Virus record (IMG/VR): IMGVR_UViG_3300025161_000004
Span: 62,001 to 126,000 of that record
Length of the DNA stretch: 64,000 nt
Reading direction: 5' to 3' (one strand)
Shown: piece after piece, positions 5,065 to 41,240 of the stretch
Position numbering within the stretch: position 1 is the first letter of the stretch
Layout: each line of letters starts with the position of its first letter
Program-made: the position numbers and the translations under genes
Notes under the pieces: model-generated
The model's input: the letters and a program-made list of their open reading frames with translations, nothing else
The model's database searches: none
Told to the model about the DNA's origin: nothing

Positions 5065-5433
5065 TTATTCGAAATCTTCCGATTTCTCATCGTATTTTTT
5101 TATTTTTCTTTTTTCTTTTTTGGGTGGTTGAATATCTACCTGACTCTGCAAAGTTGGTGTTTCAGTCTTACTTACATTTGTCTGTTTTTGTTGCTGTTGA
5201 ATTTTTTCATATTCAATATCACTTATTTTTTTGACTGTGATAAGATTTTTTGCTTTTAAAATATGAACACCAAGAGGTAGATTATCAGCGTTAATAATCA
5301 TCTCTCTACCTGATGCTAATTTATAGAATTTCTTTTCAAATTGACTAAAATATTCAATATCTAGTGTTTGATTTAGATTTGGATGCCTCTTATCAAGTTT
5401 GTTTGTGATATTTTTAATTAAAAAATATGCCAT
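5065..5433 (-). CDS. Hypothetical protein (122 aa)
   Basis: ORF in a tightly packed run on the coding strand. Confidence 0.7.
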   Translation of the reverse strand: MAYFLIKNITNKLDKRHPNLNQTLDIEYFSQFEKKFYKLASGREMIINADNLPLGVHILKAKNLITVKKISDIEYEKIQQQQKQTNVSKTETPTLQSQVDIQPPKKEKRKIKKYDEKSEDFE

Positions 5434-5458: not shown

Positions 5459-6250
5459 TTAAAATACTTGAAGCATTATTGAACCATACTTAATTCCGTC
5501 ATAACCCATTTTTTTTGCTTTTTCTGATACAAGCATATTACATAGGTTTTCAAGTTTAGTTCCAACCTCAGTCGCAAGATCATTTAAATTTACATTAGGA
5601 AACCATATTTTAGCTAATCCAACGGTTGGTATTGTATCTTTGGTAAATGTGATATCCATTCTATCAGTATCAAGCAAATTGTCAAACTTAATTTCAAATA
5701 TCTTCATCCCTTTGTTGGGATTAAGTGAAAAAAAGTTCCCTACCTTTGAATTAGGTTTTGGCTCATCTTCTCTATACCCAATATAGATCTCACTATTTGT
5801 TTTTTTTTCGTTTTTAGGTATTTCACGGAATAATTGACTTAATATATCAGAATCTTGAACATCCTGAGATATTACTTCGTCAAGTGCTCTTTGTCTTTTA
5901 TAGTGAAAAATGTCAATTATCTTATTTAAAATTCTTGCAGCTTGATGCAGCGGTAAATCTATCTGTATAGCCCTTAATGGTTTATTTTTATTAATAAATG
6001 CTGCATATCTATGATGACCATCTAATATCTCATTATCTTTTGATAACCATATTGGTTGATTGATTTCACCACTTTTCATGATTGAAGATACTTTACATAA
6101 ATCAACTAAACCTTGCGTAGGCTTTAATTTATCAGGAGTAATCTTTAGTATTTTATAATTTACATTTTCATCGTCTAATTGATCTATAACATACAAAAAT
6201 GGTGCAGAAACCTGTGGTAAATATTTTGATCTATATCTCATTTCTATCAT
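5459..6250 (-). CDS. ParB/Sulfiredoxin-like N-terminal domain protein with a C-terminal 'GYDGI' (ART-like) region
   Basis: 'LKPTQ...PIWLSKDNEILDGHHRYAA' ParB/Srx motif; C-terminal 'GYRE..GNFFS...GYDGIKY'. Confidence 0.6.
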   Translation of the reverse strand: MIEMRYRSKYLPQVSAPFLYVIDQLDDENVNYKILKITPDKLKPTQGLVDLCKVSSIMKSGEINQPIWLSKDNEILDGHHRYAAFINKNKPLRAIQIDLPLHQAARILNKIIDIFHYKRQRALDEVISQDVQDSDILSQLFREIPKNEKKTNSEIYIGYREDEPKPNSKVGNFFSLNPNKGMKIFEIKFDNLLDTDRMDITFTKDTIPTVGLAKIWFPNVNLNDLATEVGTKLENLCNMLVSEKAKKMGYDGIKYGSIMLQVF

Positions 6251-6262
6251 TTCAAGATTTTT

Positions 6263-6829
6263 TTATAAATACTTTTTAATACTTTTTTTTATTAAAAACT
6301 CAATAGTTTGGTATCTTTCTACCAAATAAAATTGTCCGTTATTGACATGATAAATCTCTACCTTAATTGTGCTGTCAACTTCATGTTTTAATGATTTAAG
6401 TAATTCTATTTGATCGTTTTGATCGTCATAGATATTAATTTCTTCTAATGATGGAAATTTATCTAAAATATCTAATATCCTTTCTTTCTTATTTCTATTA
6501 TCATTTTTAAATGAATATTCATCAAAATATATTCCCATCGAATTAAGTAAATTCATTATAATTGGCTGAAATTTTGGTATCCTATTGGTTAATAAAACGG
6601 TGTAGGAATTAGGATTTGAATTTTCTCTTTCTAAAATATTTTTAATTTGCTCAAATGGTTTTATGTCAAAAACATTAGTATTTAAACTATCTAGTTGACC
6701 CCACCATCCTTTATGAGGATATTCTTTACCAGTTTTCTCTTTCCATAATAACCTACCAGTGTCTGGTGTAGGTACATCCATTAATGTACCGTCATGATCA
6801 ATAAAAACTAATTTAGTTATATTATTCAT
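6263..6829 (-). CDS. HAD-superfamily phosphatase (RNA-repair / polynucleotide 3'-phosphatase-like)
   Basis: Motif I 'FIDHDGTL', motif II 'LLTNR', Lys 'NKKERI', motif IV 'IYDD'; 'WW' motif typical of Swiss-army-knife RNA-repair HADs. Confidence 0.7.
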   Translation of the reverse strand: MNNITKLVFIDHDGTLMDVPTPDTGRLLWKEKTGKEYPHKGWWGQLDSLNTNVFDIKPFEQIKNILERENSNPNSYTVLLTNRIPKFQPIIMNLLNSMGIYFDEYSFKNDNRNKKERILDILDKFPSLEEINIYDDQNDQIELLKSLKHEVDSTIKVEIYHVNNGQFYLVERYQTIEFLIKKSIKKYL

Positions 6830-6833
6830 TTTA

Positions 6834-7214
6834 TTATGTGGTTATTTCTTTAACAGTCCCCTTTACCAAAAATATAATATCAAGAGGTTGCCAATTAGTA
6901 ATGTAATTACTCATAACTGGTTTTCCACCATTGTTAACGTCAACAGCAAGTGTTATGTGGGGAATTTTATTAACGCTAGGAAATCCTTCAACTCTAACTG
7001 CAATAACCTTTTCATCTATTCCTAGTGCAACAACTCTTAACATAACATCCATACCTAAGTATTTTCTATATTCCTCTTTAAGTTCACCCATGTTAATTGT
7101 CATATGGTGAGCATAGATTTTAAAATCTTTAGGTATAAATGTCTTAAATGTGTTAATTAATAAGTTATGTGAATCTTCATTAAGAACCACTGCACTATAT
7201 AATACCTTTTTCAT
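6834..7214 (-). CDS. 2H phosphoesterase (tRNA-ligase cyclic phosphodiesterase-like)
   Basis: Two HxT motifs, 'HHMTI' and 'PHITLA', followed by 'GGKPVMSN'. Confidence 0.75.
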   Translation of the reverse strand: MKKVLYSAVVLNEDSHNLLINTFKTFIPKDFKIYAHHMTINMGELKEEYRKYLGMDVMLRVVALGIDEKVIAVRVEGFPSVNKIPHITLAVDVNNGGKPVMSNYITNWQPLDIIFLVKGTVKEITT

Positions 7215-7216
7215 AA

Positions 7217-8314
7217 TTAACTTTTACTATATGAAATTATTCTAACACTAGTATTACCCATATTATCAATTGCAACTATCTTTATTTTTTGATGTGCAAT
7301 ATCTATAGAAATAGGTTCATTATACTCCACAAACTTGCCGTTATCGTTTAATTGTACTAATATTTTTTTTACACCAGACTTATTATCAATGGCTTCAATA
7401 TTAAGAATTCTTTTACTATTTAATTCGTTAATACTTTCATCGATTTTTATTTCAGGTGCTTTTATATCTAAATAAAATTCGTATACATTTGTTTCTTCCT
7501 GATTATTTATCCAATCAAGTGCATAATATTCTATTTTATGTTTACCATCTTTAAGACCTAACATTGTTATTGGTTTTTCATACGGTTTAAATCCGCCACC
7601 ATCAATACTATAATAGATTACACTAACACCGACATTATCATCAACACTACTAATAACTAATAAATCTTTAGATGATAGTATTGAGTCGCTATTATTTATT
7701 TTTGATACTGGTGCAGTATTATCGATACCAAATAATAAATTGTTTTTATCAGAAAAATATGAAATTTCGCTAATATCTTCGACATTTCCAACATTATCTA
7801 CAGAATAAAATTTGAGATTAATATCTTTTTTAGTATCAAATGATATTAAACCATCATATTTAACAAATTCAGACCCATCTATAGAGTAATAAGTTACTTT
7901 AACTCCAGAAAGGGCATCATATGATGTGAGTTTAGCTTTAACATCATCACTATAATATGTTTTACCTTTAAAAGTGTATTTTTCTTTAGATATAAAACTA
8001 ACCTTTGTAACAGGTGCTCTACTATCAGCATAAACTGTCCATAGCTGCTCTCTTAATGGTTGTACATACCTACCTAATGAATCCATCTCCCATTTAGTCC
8101 TTATATAATTAGCACCCTCAGTATCAAGATACATTGGTTTACTAAATTTATAATCTTCTTCTCCTGTGCTAATATGAATATATAGAGGTAGTGACTTATT
8201 CCATATAATACTATCACCTTTTTGATATATGGTTTTTTTTTCGGGTAATTGTGATTGACTAAACAACGGTAAAGCTATTACCGAGAATACAAATATCACT
8301 ATATAACGTTTCAT
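7217..8314 (-). CDS. Secreted/envelope protein with Ig-like (OmpL47-type) beta-sandwich repeats
   Basis: N-terminal signal peptide; repeated 'D..AP.(T/S)...D..SGV...YYSIDG..F..Y......YS.D..GN.E' units. Confidence 0.65.
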   Translation of the reverse strand: MKRYIVIFVFSVIALPLFSQSQLPEKKTIYQKGDSIIWNKSLPLYIHISTGEEDYKFSKPMYLDTEGANYIRTKWEMDSLGRYVQPLREQLWTVYADSRAPVTKVSFISKEKYTFKGKTYYSDDVKAKLTSYDALSGVKVTYYSIDGSEFVKYDGLISFDTKKDINLKFYSVDNVGNVEDISEISYFSDKNNLLFGIDNTAPVSKINNSDSILSSKDLLVISSVDDNVGVSVIYYSIDGGGFKPYEKPITMLGLKDGKHKIEYYALDWINNQEETNVYEFYLDIKAPEIKIDESINELNSKRILNIEAIDNKSGVKKILVQLNDNGKFVEYNEPISIDIAHQKIKIVAIDNMGNTSVRIISYSKS

Positions 8315-8976
8315 TAATTTTTCTCATTTTTAAATCTATCTTTTATTTGTTGTAGTTCTCTTTGCATTCTTGGGCTTAATGGTACACCATTATTTCTAAA
8401 TATCGTTGTAGAATCAAGAATAGGTTTACTTACAATTACTTCTCTTTCAGGTGTGATAAATACACGTAATATATGGGTTCGATCCAATCGAATAACATAA
8501 TTACCGGGTTCTAATTCTTCAAAAGTTTTTGTTTCAATTATCGGTTTTTCTGGAATTTTTAATTCTTCCTTATTCTTTACTTCGTTATCTTTGGCAAATC
8601 TTTTTATTTTTTCAAGCTCAGATTTGATGATATTAATTTCAGCAAGCAATTTTTTCTTTATTTCATCATCTTCTTTTTTTTTATACTCGTATGCCATTCT
8701 CTCCATTTCATTAGCTCTTTCATTTAGTGAATCTAAGCGAGATAATAATTTAGTTTTTTGTTTAATAATTTTATTAAGTATAGTATGTACATTATCCGTA
8801 TTTTTGTCAAAAGATATATTTAATTCTTCAGCTAATCTGATTATAGAATCTTCTCTTGTCATCGGTATCGATGATAATTGAATTGGTTTTTCTTCTTTTG
8901 GATTATATCCAGTACATCCAAGTAATATTAAATTACTTACGAAGAAGTATTTCAAGTACTTTATCAACTCTTTCAT
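8314..8976 (-). CDS. Predicted lipoprotein with coiled coil
   Basis: Lipobox 'LILLGC' after a basic/hydrophobic N-terminus; long heptad region. Confidence 0.6.
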   Translation of the reverse strand: MKELIKYLKYFFVSNLILLGCTGYNPKEEKPIQLSSIPMTREDSIIRLAEELNISFDKNTDNVHTILNKIIKQKTKLLSRLDSLNERANEMERMAYEYKKKEDDEIKKKLLAEINIIKSELEKIKRFAKDNEVKNKEELKIPEKPIIETKTFEELEPGNYVIRLDRTHILRVFITPEREVIVSKPILDSTTIFRNNGVPLSPRMQRELQQIKDRFKNEKN

Positions 8977-9250
8977 TTGTTTTTTCTATTTTAGAAGATA
9001 ATTCACTATTAGTCTTCTGTATATCATCTAATTGTTTCATTATTAATGCATCGTTACCTCTTGATTTTAATTGTTCCTCAAGATGTTCTATCTTTTTATC
9101 ATGCTCCTTTACCTTATAATCAGTTATCATATAATTTCCAACACCCATAGCAACAAAAAGTACAAAACCAATTATGGTTTTATAATGACTCAACTTAGTT
9201 GCTAAAATACCTTCAAAAGTATTATTCCCATTTTTTTCTGAATTTGCCAT
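8933..9250 (-). CDS. Small single-pass membrane protein with C-terminal coiled coil
   Basis: Hydrophobic stretch 'IIGFVLFVAMGVG' then heptads; overlaps the downstream lipoprotein gene by 44 nt. Confidence 0.6.
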   Translation of the reverse strand: MANSEKNGNNTFEGILATKLSHYKTIIGFVLFVAMGVGNYMITDYKVKEHDKKIEHLEEQLKSRGNDALIMKQLDDIQKTNSELSSKIEKTNERVDKVLEILLRK

Positions 9251-9284: not shown

Positions 9285-12284
9285 TTATGTTGTATTGATA
9301 ATATTTAATAAATCATTTTTATTATTTTTTACTTTATCAGAATATACTGAAATTAACATACTTTTTAATGCATCACCTAACTTTTTACCTGACATACCCA
9401 TGTTTAAAAGATCATTACCTGTAATAACTAAATCTTTATAACTTTTTGGATATTTACCAGTTTTTAATTCTTCTGTTGCCATTAATAATTTCTTAGGGAG
9501 AATTTTGCTGTTAAGTGACGCAGGATATATTGTGTACATATTATGAGCGACAATCCTATTTTTAATTGGATTATTTGTTACATTATTAAATCCTGTCTGT
9601 AATGCAAGGATTTCCTTATATGTTGATATATCACCCTTTAAAATATTTTTATAAAACTCTGCTGGATTTTCTTGAACTGGTGATGCTAATAGATAAATAT
9701 ATTCACCCATAGTTTTAACTTCATTCCATGCATTCAAATCCCAATGATCTTCAAAACCTTCAGGAGATTTTGCACCAAATATTTGTTCATATAATCCAGT
9801 TTCTCTTAATAGATCAGCACCATACAACACATCACCCTTTTTTACTATCTTATCAAGTTCAGTTAATATTCTTTCTGCTGGTATTTCTTTTATCCTATGA
9901 GCATTTTGTTTTATTAATTCCATTGTTTTTTCTTCGATCATAAATCCTTCAAATCTTGCTGCGAATTGTACTGCTCTAAGCATACGAAGCGGATCATCTG
10001 AAAATGCCTTTGGATTAACCACTCTAATGATTTTATTTTTTAAATCTTCTTGTCCACCATATGGATCAACAATATCACCAGAAGCACTTTTAGCGATTGC
10101 ATTAATAGTAAAATCTCTTCTCTCTAAATCTTTTTCTATTGGCAATGAATGATCTGAGGCTATTTCAAATCCTTTATGTCCACCCTTACCAGTCGCTCTT
10201 TCTGTTCTTGGAATTGCGATATCGATCTCTTCTGATGAACCTTCTGGTTTAAATTTTAGTATACCAAATGATTTACCAACAGCATTAACTCTACCGTATT
10301 TCGATAATAATTTTTCTAAATTTTCTAATGATATACCAGTAATTAATACATCAAGGTCTTTAGAATCTTTACCTAAAAACTCATCTCTAACTGCACCACC
10401 AACAGAATATAACTTACCACCAAGATTTTCAATTTCTTGCTTAAATGGTAAATCATTTATGTCATTAATACTTATTGCTTCATTTATATTATTGCTATTT
10501 GGGGCAACATAATGATCATAATACATTTCTAGTTGTCTTTCATTATAAAAGTAGCGCACATTCTCAGGCTTATAGTTTACCATTTCACGACCTTTAATTA
10601 TTACTCCGTCATAACCAAGTTTCATCATTTTTTCTGAAATAGAATTAACATCTCTACTATCAGGATATGTCTTACCTTTTGCTTTAGATATTGGAAATAC
10701 TATGTTATTTTGAAACCAAATTTCCCAATCATTTAATGTATTAAATACTTTAGGATTTTTTGGTTTGGCGTTCACTAACATAACAAGTTTACCATATTTT
10801 CTTGCCATACTTTTATTTGATGCTGGCACACTATATAATCCTCTACCAAGTATTGCCATTCCATTATTCTCACCGTTAACTGCATTATCTGAGATACCTC
10901 TATATGTTACGTTCTCTCTTTTCCATTTCTTATATTCTAAATCACTATTTTCTCTTATAGGTCTCAATTTTAAATTTGAAATATCTCCTTGATTACATGC
11001 ATCACTTGTACCATCTGATTTACCTGCTAATTTACAATTTCTTTTAACTTCTACAGACGTACTATTTGGCATATATGTCATTTTTCTTTCGAATACAGGT
11101 TCTGAATCTTTCAGATACATTCGCATTTCTCTAATAACATATTCTTTAATTTTAGAGTAGTATGATTTATATACATTATCATCTAAACCATAATCAATTA
11201 ATATTACGGCAGGTTTTCCATTCCTTATTGATATACCATACGACGATCTAGCAACTAAATCACCTACAGGCATATCAGCATCATCCATTAATTGTTTTAT
11301 AACTTTAGCAAATGAATTTGGAGACTTACTATTTTGAAATGCTTCGTATTCTTCAGGTGTTACTGCTTGTTTCCATTCTTGATTGTATTTTTCACTAGTT
11401 AAAAATACACCAAAAGTTCTAAAACTATAACCTTCAATTTCTTTAAATTTTTCTTCACTAATTTTTGAAGCATATTCGGATATTATCCAAATAAAATCAG
11501 GATCAAAATCAAACACTTGAGCCACTGCATCTGCATAGTATTTATCAGTACCAATTTCGGCTTCTAAAAAATTTTGACCTAAACCCTTACTATTTTTTGC
11601 TAATTTTATAACCTTTTTATTATCAATTTTGAAAACAATTCTACTACTACCTTCACCCAATAATTTCAACTTATTTTTTAAATAAAAAATTTTACCCTTG
11701 TATGTTTTTATTTTTTTTAAATCTTCAACACTAAATGGTTTATCCGCTATTTTATTTTCATTTTCAACAACACCATCAGTTGACATATATAAAGATGAAC
11801 CATTTTCATTAATACCTAAACTATTCAAATAATTTTTTAACATCATTAACTTTTCATAAAACATTGGTTCGTTATTAGATAATGCAATAGCTTTTTTTAT
11901 ATTATGTTTGATAATAGAATAATGCTTATATAAAACATCTTTACTAAATTCAGCATAGTCTGATATAGATTCAATAAATGAAACACTTTTTTTTATCTGA
12001 CTAAGATTAACACCCTTTATTAAATTTTCTGTTACTTTTAAAGGTTCGATTGCCCATAAATCATGATCATCGGATGGTGGTTCTATATTTCGAAGCTGAT
12101 CTTCTTTATTCATATCACGTAATTCGTCTGTCGGTGCTACACTATTGTAGTAGTCTGATGAATCTAATAAATTCTCCAACGACAGTTCAGTAGCTTCATT
12201 AATATCATTATTTTTTTCTAATTCGATTTCTATACCTTTCAATAGGATTTCTTTAGGGGTTTGTTTTGTGCTTTTTTGTAACAT
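9285..12284 (-). CDS. Multidomain protein: kinase-like domain, ART-like domain and C-terminal class II CCA-adding (tRNA nucleotidyltransferase) domain
   Basis: Kinase-like 'LGEGSSRIVF..VIKLA..N..E...GDL...LIDYG'; ART-like 'YRG...GRGLYS...GYDGVII'; nucleotidyltransferase 'VGGAVRD....KDLDV', 'DLERRDFTINA', 'DDPLRMLRAVQFAARF', 'ERI'. Confidence 0.85.
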   Translation of the reverse strand: MLQKSTKQTPKEILLKGIEIELEKNNDINEATELSLENLLDSSDYYNSVAPTDELRDMNKEDQLRNIEPPSDDHDLWAIEPLKVTENLIKGVNLSQIKKSVSFIESISDYAEFSKDVLYKHYSIIKHNIKKAIALSNNEPMFYEKLMMLKNYLNSLGINENGSSLYMSTDGVVENENKIADKPFSVEDLKKIKTYKGKIFYLKNKLKLLGEGSSRIVFKIDNKKVIKLAKNSKGLGQNFLEAEIGTDKYYADAVAQVFDFDPDFIWIISEYASKISEEKFKEIEGYSFRTFGVFLTSEKYNQEWKQAVTPEEYEAFQNSKSPNSFAKVIKQLMDDADMPVGDLVARSSYGISIRNGKPAVILIDYGLDDNVYKSYYSKIKEYVIREMRMYLKDSEPVFERKMTYMPNSTSVEVKRNCKLAGKSDGTSDACNQGDISNLKLRPIRENSDLEYKKWKRENVTYRGISDNAVNGENNGMAILGRGLYSVPASNKSMARKYGKLVMLVNAKPKNPKVFNTLNDWEIWFQNNIVFPISKAKGKTYPDSRDVNSISEKMMKLGYDGVIIKGREMVNYKPENVRYFYNERQLEMYYDHYVAPNSNNINEAISINDINDLPFKQEIENLGGKLYSVGGAVRDEFLGKDSKDLDVLITGISLENLEKLLSKYGRVNAVGKSFGILKFKPEGSSEEIDIAIPRTERATGKGGHKGFEIASDHSLPIEKDLERRDFTINAIAKSASGDIVDPYGGQEDLKNKIIRVVNPKAFSDDPLRMLRAVQFAARFEGFMIEEKTMELIKQNAHRIKEIPAERILTELDKIVKKGDVLYGADLLRETGLYEQIFGAKSPEGFEDHWDLNAWNEVKTMGEYIYLLASPVQENPAEFYKNILKGDISTYKEILALQTGFNNVTNNPIKNRIVAHNMYTIYPASLNSKILPKKLLMATEELKTGKYPKSYKDLVITGNDLLNMGMSGKKLGDALKSMLISVYSDKVKNNKNDLLNIINTT

Positions 12285-14228: not shown

Positions 14229-15107
14229 CTATACATTTAATTTTGTTAAGGCGTTGCTTACATAAAGCACTAAATTTGGCACAGTATCAATATATTCCAT
14301 TTCAGGAATACTATACCAACCATAAGCAGTATTCTCATTATTTAATTGAATATCATATAAATCACCATTATAAAATGCTGTAAAAACATGTAATTTTGAA
14401 TTAGGTAAATCAACCACAAACGATTTATTGAAATTATCTAATTCAAGTCCTGTTTCTTCCCAAACCTCTCTTTTTATTGCATCTTCTGGTTTTTCACCAT
14501 CTTCGACACCACCACCAACTAAAGCCCATTTATCTGGCATCCATTGGTCTTTTTCTGGTGATCTTTTAGCCAGCAAAACATTACCATCAGTATTATAAAT
14601 GACAGCAATAACATTATGCTTTATTCCCTTAGTTATTTCTCCAATAAATCCATCAACTTCCTCATTTATTCTATAATCTACAATATCAGCAATAAAATGA
14701 TTTTCAGATTTATAATCCTCGGTCATTTTTAAACTCAAATCCACAATACCTGATTGTGCACCTAAAGTATGGATACCAGTAGTTTTTTTTACATCAACTC
14801 CTTGTCTGTTTTTTGATGATAATTCAGTTCTTTTTCTCTCATTACTTAATGTTCTTTCAACCCATATTTTCATATCATCACCACCAGATAATTCATATTG
14901 TTCAGGTGTATTTTTTTTACTATTATAATGGTCGAAAAAATTCTTTAAACCCTTTAACATTTGATATGTACAATAACCATTTTTAACTAAGAATTTAGCT
15001 CTTTTAATCCCATCAGAATTATCATCTGCATTATAAATTAACACATTTAGCTTTTTAATGATTGAATGTGGTACTTTATATTTTTTATTGTAAAGTTGTG
15101 AGTTCAT
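14229..15107 (-). CDS. NUDIX hydrolase with an N-terminal domain of unknown function
   Basis: Nudix box 'GGGVEDGEKPEDAIKREVWEETGL'. Confidence 0.85.
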   Translation of the reverse strand: MNSQLYNKKYKVPHSIIKKLNVLIYNADDNSDGIKRAKFLVKNGYCTYQMLKGLKNFFDHYNSKKNTPEQYELSGGDDMKIWVERTLSNERKRTELSSKNRQGVDVKKTTGIHTLGAQSGIVDLSLKMTEDYKSENHFIADIVDYRINEEVDGFIGEITKGIKHNVIAVIYNTDGNVLLAKRSPEKDQWMPDKWALVGGGVEDGEKPEDAIKREVWEETGLELDNFNKSFVVDLPNSKLHVFTAFYNGDLYDIQLNNENTAYGWYSIPEMEYIDTVPNLVLYVSNALTKLNV

Positions 15108-35194: not shown

Positions 35195-36218
35195 TTATTC
35201 TAATAGATTAAAACCGATTTTTCCATTAAATTCTTTGTGTCCGTTATAATTGTTGTAATTATAGAGTTCTGCTAAAGTATGCTCTTTATTTACTCTTATA
35301 TCAGAACCAATTCTTTCAAGAACTTTATTACACATGTCAATCGATAATCTTCCAAAATTAACTTCAGCTAACAATCTTCCTTTTCTAAACAAAGCCGTAT
35401 CAATATTTTCTTTGACATTGATAGTTGCTAAAATCTTTATCTTAAAAAGATCACCCATAATACCATCACAAACGTTTAACAGTGTAGAGATTATATTATT
35501 TGATCGCATTTTTCTATCTATAAATAGATTTTCACTATCCTCAAATATAAGAATATTGTCTTTCAAATTTTGAATTACAAAACTCATATTTCTCGGCTCA
35601 AATAAATATTGAACCATGTCTTGTGTTACGTAAACAAAATCTTTTTTAACACTCTTCACTAAATGCTTTATAAGATAGGATTTTCCAGTACCTGGGTCAC
35701 CCATAAAAATAATTAATCCGCTTTTATCCATTGATAATATTTCTTGTAATTCATTAATGGTGAAGTTAATATTATAACTATCTTCATGTAATTCAAACTT
35801 AGGTAATGTAAATGGTATCTTGTTGATATTATAATTATCTGCAACAAGAAAATATACATTATCTTTTTTTTTCTAGACTTTTCTCGAAATCAATTAACAA
35901 AGCATTAATTTTTTCTGAATTTTTAAACTTACTACAGTAAAAATGTGATATTTTAAAAGTAATCAAAATATATGATTTATATGTTTTGTGAACTAAATGT
36001 ATCTCATTACTAAAATCTAATAAAATAGAATAACCTGCATTAAGTAATTTTTGTAATAAATCAGGGTTTATCAAGTTTTCATTATTATTTTTAAATATTT
36101 TATGGAATAATGTATTATTACTATCAATATTCATCACATCAAAAATATAACGGTAGTATAAAAAACTATTATATACCCCAATATATTTAGAATCTAATTG
36201 TTTATTTGTTCGAGTCAT
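35195..36218 (-). CDS. AAA+ ATPase apparently split by a frameshift at an A9 tract (joined product about 340 aa)
   Basis: Walker A 'GDPGTGKS', Walker B 'LIFED', 'LLNVCDG', 'ATIN', 'DTALFRKGR'. The ATPase frame is open for 44 codons upstream of 35731, back to the A9 tract at 35864-35872. Deleting one A fuses it to ORF 35859..36218. Confidence 0.7.
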
Positions 36219-37197
36219 AATGTTTGTTTATTATTTTAAAACTTCCTTTACTATATTGTACTACTACACCTTCAAACGGTTTACCATATAATTCTTTTAG
36301 GTCTTCAGAATATTTTTTTATTAAATCTGGCGTTAAAATCACGTTTTCTTCAACTAATTTCACCGTAGGTAAATCCATTTCCTTTGCAACATTAAGAAAA
36401 TAAAATTGATCGCCTTTACGTGCATATCTACGTTCATCAATCAAATAAACAGAAAACATTGCCCAACCATTACTCAATTTTGAGTGTGGATTAATCTTTA
36501 TTGATTGAATACCAATACCATATGATTCACCACGAATTGAAAGAGAGATTCTATACTTTTCACTAAACTCGGTAAGTTTCCTTTCAATATCATATCTTGA
36601 GACATTATTAGTATAGTTATTTGAAATTTCTAGCTTTAATTCATGTTTCCTACCCAAAACACCAAATGTTTTTTCGACGAAATGACGGTAAAATGAATTA
36701 CTTTGACCATCAATTTTTAAAAAAATATCAACCAATTCACCATATGGTAATTCTGAATTATCTAAATTTTCCCACCTTTCTTCATCAGTTACAGGAATAC
36801 CATATGGTAATTCTCCTTTTATTGAGATATCGGTTGGTGTGGGTGGTTCATAATGACTAATCCAAAGTAGTTCTGATACATCCTCACCAACATGGTAATC
36901 TTTAATTGTTTCGGAAATTTCCTTGGGTAATGCTGTGAATGGTATAATAATACCTTCACTCCAAATATCACGAAGTTTAACCGCCTTCACTCTTTTTTGA
37001 GAATATTTTTTATATTCTTGTGCCCACTCAGAATCTGGAAATACACTATCGGGTCGAACATAAATAACTTTATCACCAACCTTAAACTGATCTCTTTTTG
37101 TGATACATTTATACCCCAATACTGTACAAATATCTAAACGATCGGCGTTCGGATGATTGATAACTTCTTTTACTACTTCAATTGTTGCATCTCTCAT
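36202..37197 (-). CDS. ATP-dependent RNA ligase, DRB0094/Rnl5-like, with N-terminal OB (tRNA-binding-like) domain
   Basis: N-terminal 'HPNADRLD...V.G......F.VGD.V.Y..PDS'; motif I 'KIDG', III 'RGE.YG.GIQ', IV 'EGVV', V 'FKII'. Confidence 0.85.
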   Translation of the reverse strand: MRDATIEVVKEVINHPNADRLDICTVLGYKCITKRDQFKVGDKVIYVRPDSVFPDSEWAQEYKKYSQKRVKAVKLRDIWSEGIIIPFTALPKEISETIKDYHVGEDVSELLWISHYEPPTPTDISIKGELPYGIPVTDEERWENLDNSELPYGELVDIFLKIDGQSNSFYRHFVEKTFGVLGRKHELKLEISNNYTNNVSRYDIERKLTEFSEKYRISLSIRGESYGIGIQSIKINPHSKLSNGWAMFSVYLIDERRYARKGDQFYFLNVAKEMDLPTVKLVEENVILTPDLIKKYSEDLKELYGKPFEGVVVQYSKGSFKIINKHYDSNK

Positions 37198-37698: not shown

Positions 37699-38802
37699 TT
37701 AGATACTAAAATTACTTTGTTTGCGTGATTTAGCCCTTAACTCGGTAACCCTACGTAATGATTCTGGATTAAATCTTTCTCTTTTAACAATACTTACCAT
37801 GTGGTGATAATTCTCTTCAGAGATAACTTGACCAACATAACCAGTGTGTTTTAATATATAACTTTTTGGTAAAGAAGCAGTTGCATCACTTGGATTACCT
37901 GTAGTATCCAAAGTAGATTCAAATGTAAGATCAAGTAATTCTTTTACTTTATCTTCAACAGACTTGGTAATATTTTTCTTGGTTTTATTCAAAGCAGTTT
38001 CTATCTTGCTAAGAACATCACCTCTATTTACTTTAGAATATTCTTCAGTAAAATACTTCTTACCACTTTTCTTATTCAACTCACTGATAATAGCAAGTGA
38101 CCCATAGCAATCACGTATAAGTCTTTCCCATACTTGTTCAGCATAGGTAAATGAAGGAAACTTATCAATCGCAACTATTTCACCATCGATCAATACAATT
38201 GTACCAATCAAGTTCTTTGGTCTTTCAAAGTGTGCAATAAACTGTTCGAGTTTCTTGTCGTACTTATTAAAATACTTATCAAGATAATATCCAGTATTGG
38301 TATTGGTATCTCTACCTAATTTTTCAATAGCAGGATATATGTTTGCATGACCAACAGTATAACCTACTTTATCAAACAACATTTCTCTCATTGAGAGAGG
38401 TATCAAACGCATTTCGTTGCCGTTTGTATCTCTGATGTAACCTGTTTGTGAACCCTGTACACAACCAGCATCATCATATCTTACAGTAGATGATTTTGGC
38501 AAGTATGCTGACTTCACCATACCGTGATTTTGTGCTGATTGTTTAGTCATTATCGCCAATTGAGTTGGCATAATAACTTCCTTGTTTGATTCATTCTTAA
38601 ATATTAAGTTACCATAACCACTATTAGATGCTTTAACATCTTTAAATGGATTAGCAAATCTTTCATCCAAAGAAAATTCCTTGTCTGTAGTTAAACAAAC
38701 CAATTGCATATTCATTATTGATTGAACAACTATGTTTCCAGACGCATCCTTTACTGGTCTGCAACCTTTCAATAATTCGACAAATTCTTTCTGTGCATTC
38801 AT
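37699..38802 (-). CDS. ARPP/DUF6569-like protein
   Basis: 'YG.L.F.N......P......K..AQNH...', 'GCVQ.SQ.G' and 'G.IVLIDGEIVAID.FPS..Y...W..L' pattern, recognised from memory as ARPP-type; 11 nt downstream of the TROVE-like gene. Confidence 0.5.
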   Translation of the reverse strand: MNAQKEFVELLKGCRPVKDASGNIVVQSIMNMQLVCLTTDKEFSLDERFANPFKDVKASNSGYGNLIFKNESNKEVIMPTQLAIMTKQSAQNHGMVKSAYLPKSSTVRYDDAGCVQGSQTGYIRDTNGNEMRLIPLSMREMLFDKVGYTVGHANIYPAIEKLGRDTNTNTGYYLDKYFNKYDKKLEQFIAHFERPKNLIGTIVLIDGEIVAIDKFPSFTYAEQVWERLIRDCYGSLAIISELNKKSGKKYFTEEYSKVNRGDVLSKIETALNKTKKNITKSVEDKVKELLDLTFESTLDTTGNPSDATASLPKSYILKHTGYVGQVISEENYHHMVSIVKRERFNPESLRRVTELRAKSRKQSNFSI

Positions 38803-38813
38803 ATTCTTAATCT

Positions 38814-40451
38814 TTAGGCTTTGACATAATTTTTTCTTATTCTTGAAACATTGTTTGCTTCAATCAATTTTACTTGATTTAACAACCACTGTTTAGTATC
38901 AACTTCAAGCATCTTAGCACTCATTTGAGTAGCAATTGATGCTGGGTTGCTCACTGCAAGTAATGCAACATTCGTGTTTGCAATTGGTCTCACATTTGCA
39001 TTCATTTCAGCACCAACGATTGGTGAAATCTGGAATATAGGTAATGATCTCTGTGTTTCATTGATATATGTTTCAATTACTTCACCTGCCAAACCTTCAT
39101 ACTGATTTTCATAACCATCAGTGATTATAAAAATTGCATCATATTTATTTTGTTCACTTTCGTTTTTCAACAGAGAAACAAATGCTGTAGCAATATCAGT
39201 TGCCTCACCTTCAGTATTTACCACAACTTGAGTTTTAGATGATTTTTCCAAAACTTTTACAGTGAAATCAGCAATTGCTCTTGGAGTATTCTTTGATTCC
39301 ACTTTATTACCGAACATTGAGTTTGATCTATCAACAATAATTCCAATATTGTTGTACGCAAAACCAGTGATCTTATTAGATTCTGCAAGTTTATCAATTG
39401 CATTAATCAATTTAGCATCAAAACCATTTTCATAGCCAGTTTTATACAATGCCATGAAATCAGTCGCAGCTTCTAAATTAACTTCCTTAACTACACCAAG
39501 TTTTTCATTTTTCTTGGTCTGTCTTACTTGCTGATTTACAGAAGTAACTTCATTGTTTTTTCTAATCAATGCAAGTGTTGATTTTCTCAACAATTTAGTT
39601 GACCACATACCAGCATATTGTGGGTGTTTCTTATTTGAAACTAAACCAACCAATACTTCTTCAGGTACTTTAGTTACTGAAGTAATATCTTGTGTTGCAA
39701 CATAAAATTCGCTGATAATTGGAAATTCACTTTTTGAATAAAATGATTTATCACCCTTACCAAAGATGAATAAAAAAATCTTGTATAATTTTTCACTATT
39801 AAGAATTGGAGAATACTTTTTAAGAAAAGTATTACTGATTTTTACCTCCTTTTCATTTGAATAAACTCCACCACTTCTAATATACTTTTCAGCAATAGAA
39901 AGAAGAATAGATGTTTTCTTTTCACCATAGACGTGTTTTAAAATATTTCTAATCTTTTTTCTATATTTAACAGAATAAAACTCTAAATTGGGATTACCCA
40001 AAATGTAACCAAGTACTATTTTTCTTGCTCTTTCGTTATTAATTTTATTCTTGCGTAATAAAATAAACAAACGAAGCACATAAGAAATACCTAAATTTTT
40101 ATCTAGATTATACAATGCACCAAGAAGTGCTTTATCTGAAATACCATTATCAATCCAATCAATAGGATTAACAATATAACATGCACCACCATTAGCTGTA
40201 TTTTTAAATTCATTCAATATAGCTTCCTGAATAAATTTACCTGTAACACCATTTTGATTTGCAAGTATCAATGGTAATTCTTTTGATGTTGAATATAATG
40301 ATGATATAGCATTTTTTATTGCAACATCTTGCTCCTCTTTAGAATGATAATATGTAGCTCCACCTCTCGCACCACTTGCAATAGAAATACCATCAATTAA
40401 TGATTTTTTTATTACTGATAATTGTTTTGCGGTTAATACTAATTGTTCCAT
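38814..40451 (-). CDS. TROVE/Ro60-like protein with C-terminal vWA (MIDAS) domain
   Basis: About 360-aa basic helical N-terminal region starting 'GGATYY'; then MIDAS 'IIVDRSNSM', 'ATDIA', 'IITDGYEN'. About 545 aa, as for Ro60. Likely ATG is at 40451. The vWA call is firm; the TROVE call is inferred. Confidence 0.6.
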   Translation of the reverse strand: MEQLVLTAKQLSVIKKSLIDGISIASGARGGATYYHSKEEQDVAIKNAISSLYSTSKELPLILANQNGVTGKFIQEAILNEFKNTANGGACYIVNPIDWIDNGISDKALLGALYNLDKNLGISYVLRLFILLRKNKINNERARKIVLGYILGNPNLEFYSVKYRKKIRNILKHVYGEKKTSILLSIAEKYIRSGGVYSNEKEVKISNTFLKKYSPILNSEKLYKIFLFIFGKGDKSFYSKSEFPIISEFYVATQDITSVTKVPEEVLVGLVSNKKHPQYAGMWSTKLLRKSTLALIRKNNEVTSVNQQVRQTKKNEKLGVVKEVNLEAATDFMALYKTGYENGFDAKLINAIDKLAESNKITGFAYNNIGIIVDRSNSMFGNKVESKNTPRAIADFTVKVLEKSSKTQVVVNTEGEATDIATAFVSLLKNESEQNKYDAIFIITDGYENQYEGLAGEVIETYINETQRSLPIFQISPIVGAEMNANVRPIANTNVALLAVSNPASIATQMSAKMLEVDTKQWLLNQVKLIEANNVSRIRKNYVKA

Positions 40452-40515
40452 AAACAAATTTTATATTTAAAAACTAATCTATGTCTTTATTTTCCGTATT
40501 TTCTTATTGATACCT

Positions 40516-40751: not shown

Positions 40752-40868
40752 ATGTCTTCAAATTAAAACCACCTATTTTAATTTTTTAATAGGAATATAC
40801 AAGTTCGATTTTTTTAATTGGTTATAACTTAAAATTTGAATCAAAAATCGTAACTTCATTATATATAG

Positions 40869-40941
40869 TAGCGAGAGCAGGATTCGAACCTGCGATCTTG
40901 TGGTTATGAGCCACACTAGTTAACCGCTTCTCTATCTCGCA
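40869..40941 (-). tRNA. tRNA-Met (CAT), initiator-like, no encoded CCA
   Basis: Cloverleaf: acceptor TGCGAGA/TCTCGCT with 1:72 mismatch, anticodon arm TGTGG-CTCATAA-CCACA, T arm GCAGG-TTCGAAT-CCTGC; 3' end ACTA; weak D stem. Confidence 0.85.
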
Positions 40942-41104: not shown

Positions 41105-41240
41105 TGGGGGAGGCAGGATTCGAACCTGCTATACTTACTATTGGATTAGTAATATGACCCAATTACTGTAAATATAATCAGTTCTCCAAAAAAGGAGTAG
41201 TTTAAATTATATTTGAAAGTATTCGTTTTACTACTCCCCC
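41105..41240 (-). ncRNA. 136-nt tRNA-like RNA (unit C) whose anticodon arm is replaced by the permuted repeat motif
   Basis: Acceptor GGGGGAG/CTCCCCC-A; D-like arm AGTA/TACT; perfect T arm GCAGG-TTCGAAT-CCTGC; central arm AAATATAAT..CTCC-T6-GGAG-AACTG-ATTATATTT then ACAGTAA; extra hairpin TTACTA/TAGTAA. Confidence 0.75.

Follow-up and report, generated by a model that had tools for sequence, protein, structure and literature searches.

Experimental understanding of phage RNA repair comes almost solely from T4 Pnkp and Rnl1, a phage answer to RNA damage that leaves cyclic phosphates. Here we describe a pair of adjacent genes, predicted to encode a 2H phosphoesterase and a HAD phosphatase of the 'Swiss-army-knife' (SAK) type, at positions 6263..7214 of a 64,000-nucleotide stretch of virus DNA (the window; bases 62001-126000 of a linear, 246,768-bp IMG/VR virus record that is ~79% complete and has ~28% G+C). 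The relevant clade of 2H enzymes comprises CNPase and the cyclic phosphodiesterase (CPD) domain of tRNA ligases; its members open 2',3'-cyclic phosphates, giving 2'-phosphates. Fungal and plant Trl1 and vertebrate CNPase combine a P-loop kinase with a CPD domain, and the product expected of them is a 2'-phosphate next to a free 3'-OH. SAK proteins were reportedly defined by Burroughs and Aravind in 2016.

The closest functional analogue of the pair is found in bacterial class II CCA-adding enzymes, in their HD domain. As far as the papers that cite Yakunin 2004 relate it (PMC10673834, PMC2190708), the HD domain of E. coli Cca and M. tuberculosis PcnA has 2',3'-cyclic phosphodiesterase and 2'-nucleotidase/phosphatase activities, and on that account it likewise joins these activities to CCA addition, so that blocked 3' ends are healed and re-tailed. 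Among phages, a jumbo-phage repair kit has been described that holds 2H enzymes, stand-alone SAK-family HADs, Pnk-HAD, Rnl1 and Rnl2 ligases, CCA-adding enzymes, TROVE proteins and many tRNAs, with the 2H enzyme predicted to act first in RNA repair and the SAK-HAD after it (Iyer et al. 2021, PMC7824862). RNA repair by 2H and SAK-HAD proteins in jumbo phages has thus already been predicted by comparative genomics, and the pair in the window adds another case. Furthermore, 2H domains are typical of polyvalent proteins, together with Kinase-PolyVal, ART, GNAT and DdrB-like ParB domains (Iyer et al. 2017, PMC5512222). In these two studies 2H and HAD proteins were linked to ligases and the CCA enzyme was treated separately, whereas the pair described here is coupled to the CCA-adding enzyme.

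The 2H and HAD_SAK proteins

Genes in the window lie almost all on the minus strand. Positions 6263..7214 contain exactly two minus-strand open reading frames (ORFs), 6834..7214 (126 amino acids, aa) and 6263..6829 (188 aa), separated by 4 nt and set in a closely packed run of genes (7217..8314, the 2H gene, the HAD gene, 5459..6250 and 5065..5433); all ORFs used are open under table 11. Comparison of the DNA with deposited phages gave a single match, of 4%, to a 636 kb uncultured phage. The original prediction, made from the letters of the window, had identified the two products as a stand-alone 2H phosphoesterase and a HAD phosphatase, and both identities proved right.

The 126-aa protein carries two HxT motifs, H37-M-T39 and H86-I-T88, which are invariant across an alignment of 45 2H homologues. 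Its AlphaFold2 model is confident (pLDDT 96.3, pTM 0.89), and exhaustive structural comparison returned the catalytic domain of mouse CNPase (2xmi_A) as the best fold, with a Z score of 13.1 and a root-mean-square deviation of 2.0 Å over 124/126 residues. Lower matches were a phage phosphodiesterase (Z 7.4), Acb1 (7.0), CPDases (6.5-7.0), LigT (6.1) and Usb1 (5.1); a plant CPDase acting on ADP-ribose 1''-2'' cyclic phosphate (Appr>p) shares the fold with a Z score of 6.5. The 15 best structural matches are all 2H enzymes (CNPase, phage phosphodiesterase, Acb1, CPDases, LigT, ns2, Usb1, VP3, ASCC1 and others), and the 30 top Foldseek matches are all CNPase or RICH. Sequence comparison places the protein just short of the family threshold: it scores 22.0 bits against Pfam tRNA_lig_CPD (PF08302), for which the gathering cut-off is 23, and aligns to profile positions 161-218 only, in the second half of the profile. 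Many homologues exceed the cut-off, among them close ones and fused relatives with 27.4, 28.1 and 25.6 bits. PHROGs assigns the protein to a family without known function, sequence searches of the PDB with the 126-aa and 188-aa proteins gave no match, and a profile of the 2H family gave chance-level matches only. Because the HxT motifs are invariant, the model is confident and CNPase is the top fold, the 126-aa protein is, as judged from sequence and model, a genuine 2H enzyme and a reduced core of the CNPase/tRNA-ligase CPD clade, with a predicted 2',3'-cyclic phosphodiesterase activity. By fold, with a Pfam score just under the cut-off, it falls into the same clade as Trl1 and CNPase, from which it differs in being a stand-alone core of ~60% of the CNPase domain, without an attached kinase or ligase.

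Homologues of 121-135 aa numbered at least 694 in a word-indexed search; many already carried the PF08302 annotation, and many came from contigs of 100-300 kb. The 2H family has 203 confirmed matches in IMG/VR, compared with three contigs from metagenome-assembled genomes among ~185,000 cellular species genomes, and is almost restricted to viruses. Since the three contigs are possibly mis-binned phage, no host is inferred from the family.

The 188-aa protein matches HAD_SAK_1 (PF10307) with 42.6 bits (E=7e-11, cut-off 25.6; 41 bits in the scan of the whole genome). Of the two profiles that the original prediction had named, HAD_SAK therefore recognizes its target well above the cut-off, while tRNA_lig_CPD passes its own cut-off in the homologues and not in the window protein. 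HAD motifs I-IV are intact and conserved (D11xD13xT15, T81, K114 and D135-D136), as are W42-W43 and R83, invariants specific to the HAD_SAK family. In its AlphaFold2 model (pLDDT 96.0) the closest solved folds are phosphatase domains of Pnkp enzymes, from Capnocytophaga (Pnkp1, Z 14.1) and from phage T4 (Z 13.8 and 13.2), and Pnkp1 is also the best PDB sequence match of the HAD_SAK family profile, at a marginal E=0.012. Foldseek gave, in addition, Lem4 and MDP-1, cap-less HADs with macromolecules as substrates. On this basis we predict a stand-alone SAK-type phosphatase that acts as a 2'/3'-phosphomonoesterase on RNA ends. An exhaustive HMMER search yielded 534 representative HAD_SAK clusters, and the mini-CNPase-like 2H and the SAK-HAD are accordingly both widespread in large phages. 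As small, confidently folded proteins they are well suited to biochemistry.

Coupling to the CCA-adding enzyme in related phages

A gene for a 999-aa multidomain protein (9285..12284, minus strand) lies 2 kb upstream of the 2H gene. It comprises an N-terminal region, a protein-kinase-like domain (~aa 200-390), a middle segment (~400-610) and a class II CCA-adding tRNA nucleotidyltransferase (~620-995), the last recognized by the Pfam families PolyA_pol, PolyA_pol_RNAbd and tRNA_NucTran2_2 and by phrog_2244 (tRNA nucleotidyltransferase, E=8e-67); phrog_4301 also matches the protein. Pfam detects no HD domain in this CCA-adding module, unlike that of Cca, and the 2H and HAD proteins are present instead. 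The CCA domain had been pointed out in the original prediction as part of a dispersed tRNA-repair kit; it is real, and its coupling to the pair is stronger than was claimed.

We examined gene context in 80 viral loci with a 2H gene, taken from related phages and searched with the proteins of the window. The recurring arrangement is a co-linear, same-strand cassette in which one or two giant kinase-like/CCA proteins are followed by the 2H, HAD_SAK, ParB-like and p122 genes. Where the 2H gene stands alone and enough flanking sequence is available, the CCA gene is upstream in 36/39 loci, the HAD gene downstream in 38/42 and the ParB-like gene downstream in 39/42. At 17 further loci the 2H forms the C-terminus of the CCA protein itself; here HAD is the next gene in 17/17 and the ParB-like gene is downstream in 16/17. 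In the window the ParB-like companion downstream of HAD is a 263-aa protein (5459..6250, minus strand) that matches phrog_2859 (E=1.5e-13) and, weakly, the ParB-like phrog_620. The final gene of the cassette encodes the lysine-rich, 122-aa p122 (5065..5433, minus strand), which has no significant Pfam or PHROGs family match and a homologue of which follows the ParB-like gene in 56/80 loci. No homologue of the window's RNA ligase, of ARPP-1 or of the genome's Pnkp was found within 10 kb of the 2H gene at any of the 80 loci.

Natural fusions join the same activities and tell which of them belong together. Counted over 150 HAD_SAK representative clusters, HAD_SAK is fused to this 2H in 17 (in both orders), to CCA in 13 and to the ParB-like protein in two (P0159 and P0171). 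P0131 is a 2H-HAD fusion and P0151 a CCA-HAD fusion, while P0155 unites tRNA_lig_CPD, CCA and HAD_SAK_1 by Pfam. The partner is CCA, and no fusion to a ligase was seen. We regard the 2H and HAD proteins as coupled because their genes are 4 nt apart in the window, P0131 fuses them and 17 of the 150 clusters do so; the link to CCA is strongly supported by the conserved gene order and the repeated fusions. On a quick maximum-likelihood tree of 2H domains (IQ-TREE), the CCA-fused state was gained or lost at least four times, indicating that the coupling was repeatedly re-established.

Proteins of ~300-317 aa form a second 2H subgroup (L051:9431-10360, L067:9428-10378, L031:9470-10372, L075:2588-3541 and L072:2299-3222), in which Pfam recognizes an AAA_33 P-loop kinase at the N-terminus and tRNA_lig_CPD at the C-terminus, the architecture of Trl1 and CNPase. 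These proteins are seldom near a SAK-HAD, which is downstream in 4/18 cases. The window 2H clusters with them on the same tree (SH-aLRT 96), a grouping that ties its clade to RNA-end chemistry. The literature searched, whose coverage Burroughs & Aravind 2016 lies outside, gave no description of the coupling to CCA, of the CCA-2H-HAD-ParB-p122 cassette or of phage kinase-CPD fusions, and priority for the CCA-2H-HAD fusions is therefore uncertain.

Predicted healing of RNA 3' ends and the alternatives

Folds, intact active sites, conserved gene order and recurring fusions are directly supported, and from them we infer the enzymatic steps, the substrate and the regiochemistry of the product. RNA 3'-end healing, most likely of tRNA, is the best-supported function of the pair as far as sequence and structural models tell. 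More specifically, we lean on balance towards a conserved cassette in which the 2H and HAD proteins heal the ends and the CCA-adding enzyme does the synthesis: tRNAs with a blocked 3' end would be healed and their CCA rebuilt. A metal-independent RNase of the host or of a competitor, or spontaneous damage, would leave a 2',3'-cyclic phosphate on the 3' end of tRNA or another RNA, and such an end would block both aminoacylation and extension. The 126-aa protein would open the cyclic phosphate, presumably to a 2'-phosphate and a free 3'-OH as CNPase and the CPD of Trl1 do, the HAD_SAK phosphatase would strip the remaining phosphomonoester to leave a 3'-OH/2'-OH end, and the CCA-adding domain would restore the missing C-C-A. 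In Cca the healing steps reside in one metal-dependent HD domain; the phage would use a metal-independent 2H and a HAD, encoded as separate genes or, in relatives, as 2H-CCA-HAD fusions. In contrast to Trl1, the 2H has a phosphatase and not Tpt1 as its predicted partner. Profiles for RtcB, LigT-type 2H, Acb1 (E<=0.1), Tpt1/KptA and TROVE found no match in the genome, although the absence of each is unproven because the record is 79% complete; within that limit, the lack of Tpt1/KptA or any other 2H enzyme to handle a 2'-phosphate counts for healing by the pair.

That tRNA 3' ends are real targets of conflict is indicated by two systems: CdiA-CT EC869 cleaves tRNA acceptor ends and leaves a cyclic phosphate (PMC9071432), and the CCA enzyme PcnA counters MenT3, a toxin of the tRNA 3' end (PMC11541572). 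If the proposed pathway holds, phages would mend tRNA acceptor ends besides anticodon loops, which would suggest that host nucleases target the CCA end. A more tentative extension is that CCA, the CPD-type 2H and the SAK-HAD together make up a cassette dedicated to counter-defence, directed against nucleases of the host or of competitors that cut acceptor ends with a cyclic phosphate left behind, with the ParB-like protein and p122 as further components; relatives may deliver this cassette early, inside giant polyvalent proteins. Such a cassette would be a non-orthologous replacement of the HD domain of Cca, and the tRNA 3' end would become a second front of the tRNA-centred conflict between phage and host, besides the anticodon loop.

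Several observations weigh against healing coupled to CCA addition. The 2H protein scores slightly under the Pfam CPD cut-off. Other HADs follow Pnkp closely in the fold ranking of the phosphatase (Z 12-13.6; for example 13.6 and 12.4), so the Pnkp match supports the assignment without deciding it, and proteins are the substrates of cap-less HADs like Lem4 and MDP-1. The literature search found no biochemical work on either this 2H family or any SAK-type HAD. In this phage three genes for membrane or secreted proteins separate the CCA gene from the 2H gene. The 80 loci come from related phages, and their gene order is consequently in part inherited and not independently selected. CCA is not encoded in 34/36 of the phage's tRNA genes, which gives the CCA enzyme a task in tRNA maturation for which no healing enzymes are required. 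Finally, the large fused relatives are polyvalent proteins, and fusion within them may mean co-delivery rather than a common pathway, since they also carry unrelated counter-defence domains. In four giants of 1700-2417 aa (L066:3128-10381, L042:1794-8906, L029:5279-10381 and L009:2549-9073) the CCA-adding enzyme is accompanied by SAM lyase, GNAT, an NleE-like methyltransferase, a weak ART-PolyVal and an Acb1/LigT-type 2H; the CPD-type 2H is inside the same polypeptide in L066 and L029 and is a separate next gene in L042 and L009.

Healed 3'-OH ends could also supply the phage's ATP-dependent RNA ligases, a second role compatible with CCA rebuilding. That the pair serves chiefly tRNAs with a broken anticodon loop, whose 3' ends it would ready for these ligases to seal together with a polynucleotide kinase, strikes us as unlikely, but exactly this role was put forward by Iyer et al. 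2021 (PMC7824862), and the genome does hold the other parts. An Rnl2-family ligase lies at 36202..37197 (PHA02142 OB and RNA_ligase), where the original prediction had placed an RNA ligase. That prediction had also seen no 5'-OH polynucleotide kinase in the window, and we likewise found no P-loop polynucleotide kinase within it; searching the whole genome revealed a T4-type Pnkp of 304 aa with a P-loop and DxDGT at G000:C1:212162..213076, ~86 kb past the window end (PDB Pnkp1 E=1e-58, T4 Pnk E=4e-43), and an Rnl1-family ligase at ~198971..199519 of the genome, ~73 kb past the window end. Each of five essentially complete relatives with the module (5/5) has at least one ATP-dependent RNA ligase, whereas a T4-type Pnkp match, to the kinase half only, occurs in 1/5; in such relatives the 2H and SAK-HAD may be the sole 3' healers, and end preparation for ligation may dominate there. 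The kinase-CPD fusions of the same 2H clade, moreover, resemble the healing module of Trl1.

The gene context argues the other way. The pair adjoins no ligase or Pnkp (0/80 loci within 10 kb), the window ligase is 29 kb from it in a Ro-like/ARPP-1 cluster of its own, and the fusions go to CCA and none to a ligase; polyvalent-type 2H domains were likewise reported never to be associated with RNA ligases (Iyer et al. 2017, PMC5512222). The genome's own Pnkp already provides a 3'-phosphatase and is embedded, together with Rnl1, in a tRNA island (G000:C1:187555-231505) that holds 35/36 of the genome's tRNA genes and lies at least 130 kb from the pair, so that a complete T4-style heal-and-seal pair exists independently of 2H and HAD. 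The original prediction had assembled these genes into a heal-seal-retail pathway like that of T4 Pnkp/Rnl1 against anticodon nucleases. Context bears out healing and the link to CCA in that proposal, but not the link to the ligase, and leaves the T4 analogy unsupported, even though the HAD protein is structurally nearest to the phosphatase domain of Pnkp.

It is improbable, in our judgement, that the 2H instead degrades immune nucleotides (2'-5' oligoadenylate, 2',3'-cyclic nucleoside monophosphates or, like Acb1, cyclic oligonucleotides) with the HAD dephosphorylating the products. Acb1 is also a small phage 2H enzyme, and the window protein has a fold in common with it and with other viral 2H enzymes (Z 7.0-7.4); the relatives of the cassette are polyvalent counter-defence proteins, this or an RNase role was suggested for polyvalent-type 2H domains by Iyer et al. 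2017 (PMC5512222), and no other Acb1-like gene was found in the genome. However, similarity to the CNPase/CPD type far exceeds that to Acb1 (Z 13.1 versus 7.0), and the window 2H has no match to Pfam Acb1 (PF23474) at E<=1. In relatives, the CPD-type 2H has a separate Acb1/LigT-type 2H beside it, either within one polypeptide (L066) or encoded directly upstream of it (L042), and this coexistence implies different jobs for the two. Recurrent fusion of the CPD-type 2H to the CCA enzyme, to a P-loop RNA-kinase-like domain and to an RNA-repair-type HAD likewise points to RNA ends, and the Acb1-like alternative is weakened. We give still less credence to a role in clearing a by-product of NAD, in which an ART-type enzyme would yield ADP-ribose 1''-2'' cyclic phosphate for the 2H to open and the HAD to dephosphorylate, as yeast Cpd1 or plant CPDase do after Tpt1; this we hold very improbable. 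In its favour, P0141 fuses HAD_SAK to ART-PolyVal, the middle segment of the 999-aa protein weakly resembles the C-terminal region of that ART-PolyVal (E=0.003), and the plant enzyme shares the 2H fold, as noted above. Against this, no Tpt1/KptA was found in the genome, ART-PolyVal has been grouped with protein-modifying ARTs (PMC5512222), and the ART similarity in the window is marginal, whereas similarity of the CNPase/Trl1 type dominates. Healing of RNA 3' ends coupled to CCA addition thus remains the reading that we prefer.

The candidate Ro-like cluster and other features of the genome

The ligase cluster 29 kb from the pair contains a 547-aa protein (38814..40457, minus strand) at what the original prediction had called a Ro-like locus. 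In an ESM-Atlas structure search the model of this protein resembled TROVE/vWA_Ro60 clusters (TM 0.56/0.66), and Pfam gave no match for it, to TROVE or otherwise; the resemblance is a structural lead, on which a Ro-like locus is plausible. An ARPP-1 protein (37699..38802) is encoded next to it, and the Rnl2-family ligase follows. Upstream of the 547-aa gene, on the same strand, lie a tRNA-Met gene (40868..40941, minus strand) and a tRNA-like element of 136 nt (41105..41240, minus strand), which scores 34 bits against Rfam tRNA and receives no ARAGORN call. The element closes with an acceptor-like stem, contains a canonical T-arm and carries ~65 nt of inserted sequence (minimum free energy z = -3.98); a YrlA-like Y RNA and a tRNA with an intron are candidates for its identity.

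Near the end of the tRNA island, ARAGORN identified a tRNA with the anticodon CTA (G000:C1:230500-230572, labelled tRNA-Pyl), a potential amber suppressor and thereby a possible hint that part of the genome recodes TAG. The protein-kinase-like domain of the 999-aa protein was considered as the missing RNA 5'-kinase and rejected, as it resembles T7-kinase and Kinase-PolyVal protein kinases instead, a resemblance that we treat as a lead only. A scan for sigma-70 promoters gave 50 sites compared with 52.5 expected, that is, no excess.

The three genes between the CCA and 2H genes (7217..9250, minus strand) appear by eye to encode envelope or secreted proteins: one of 365 aa with an N-terminal signal-like segment and Ig-like/CHB_HEX_C similarity, one of 220 aa with a lipobox-like LLGC, and one of 105 aa with a hydrophobic helix. 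The Ig-like gene is also present in L006, the closest relative, and absent from the other loci. A G-Y-D-G-[IV] motif is visible by eye both in the C-terminus of the ParB-like protein (5459..5520, minus strand) and in the middle segment of the 999-aa protein (10560..10640, minus strand). At 14229..15107 on the minus strand, in the interval from the cassette to the genes for DNA polymerase and helicase, lies a gene for a 292-aa protein whose C-terminal part is a NUDIX domain (Pfam E=2e-18).

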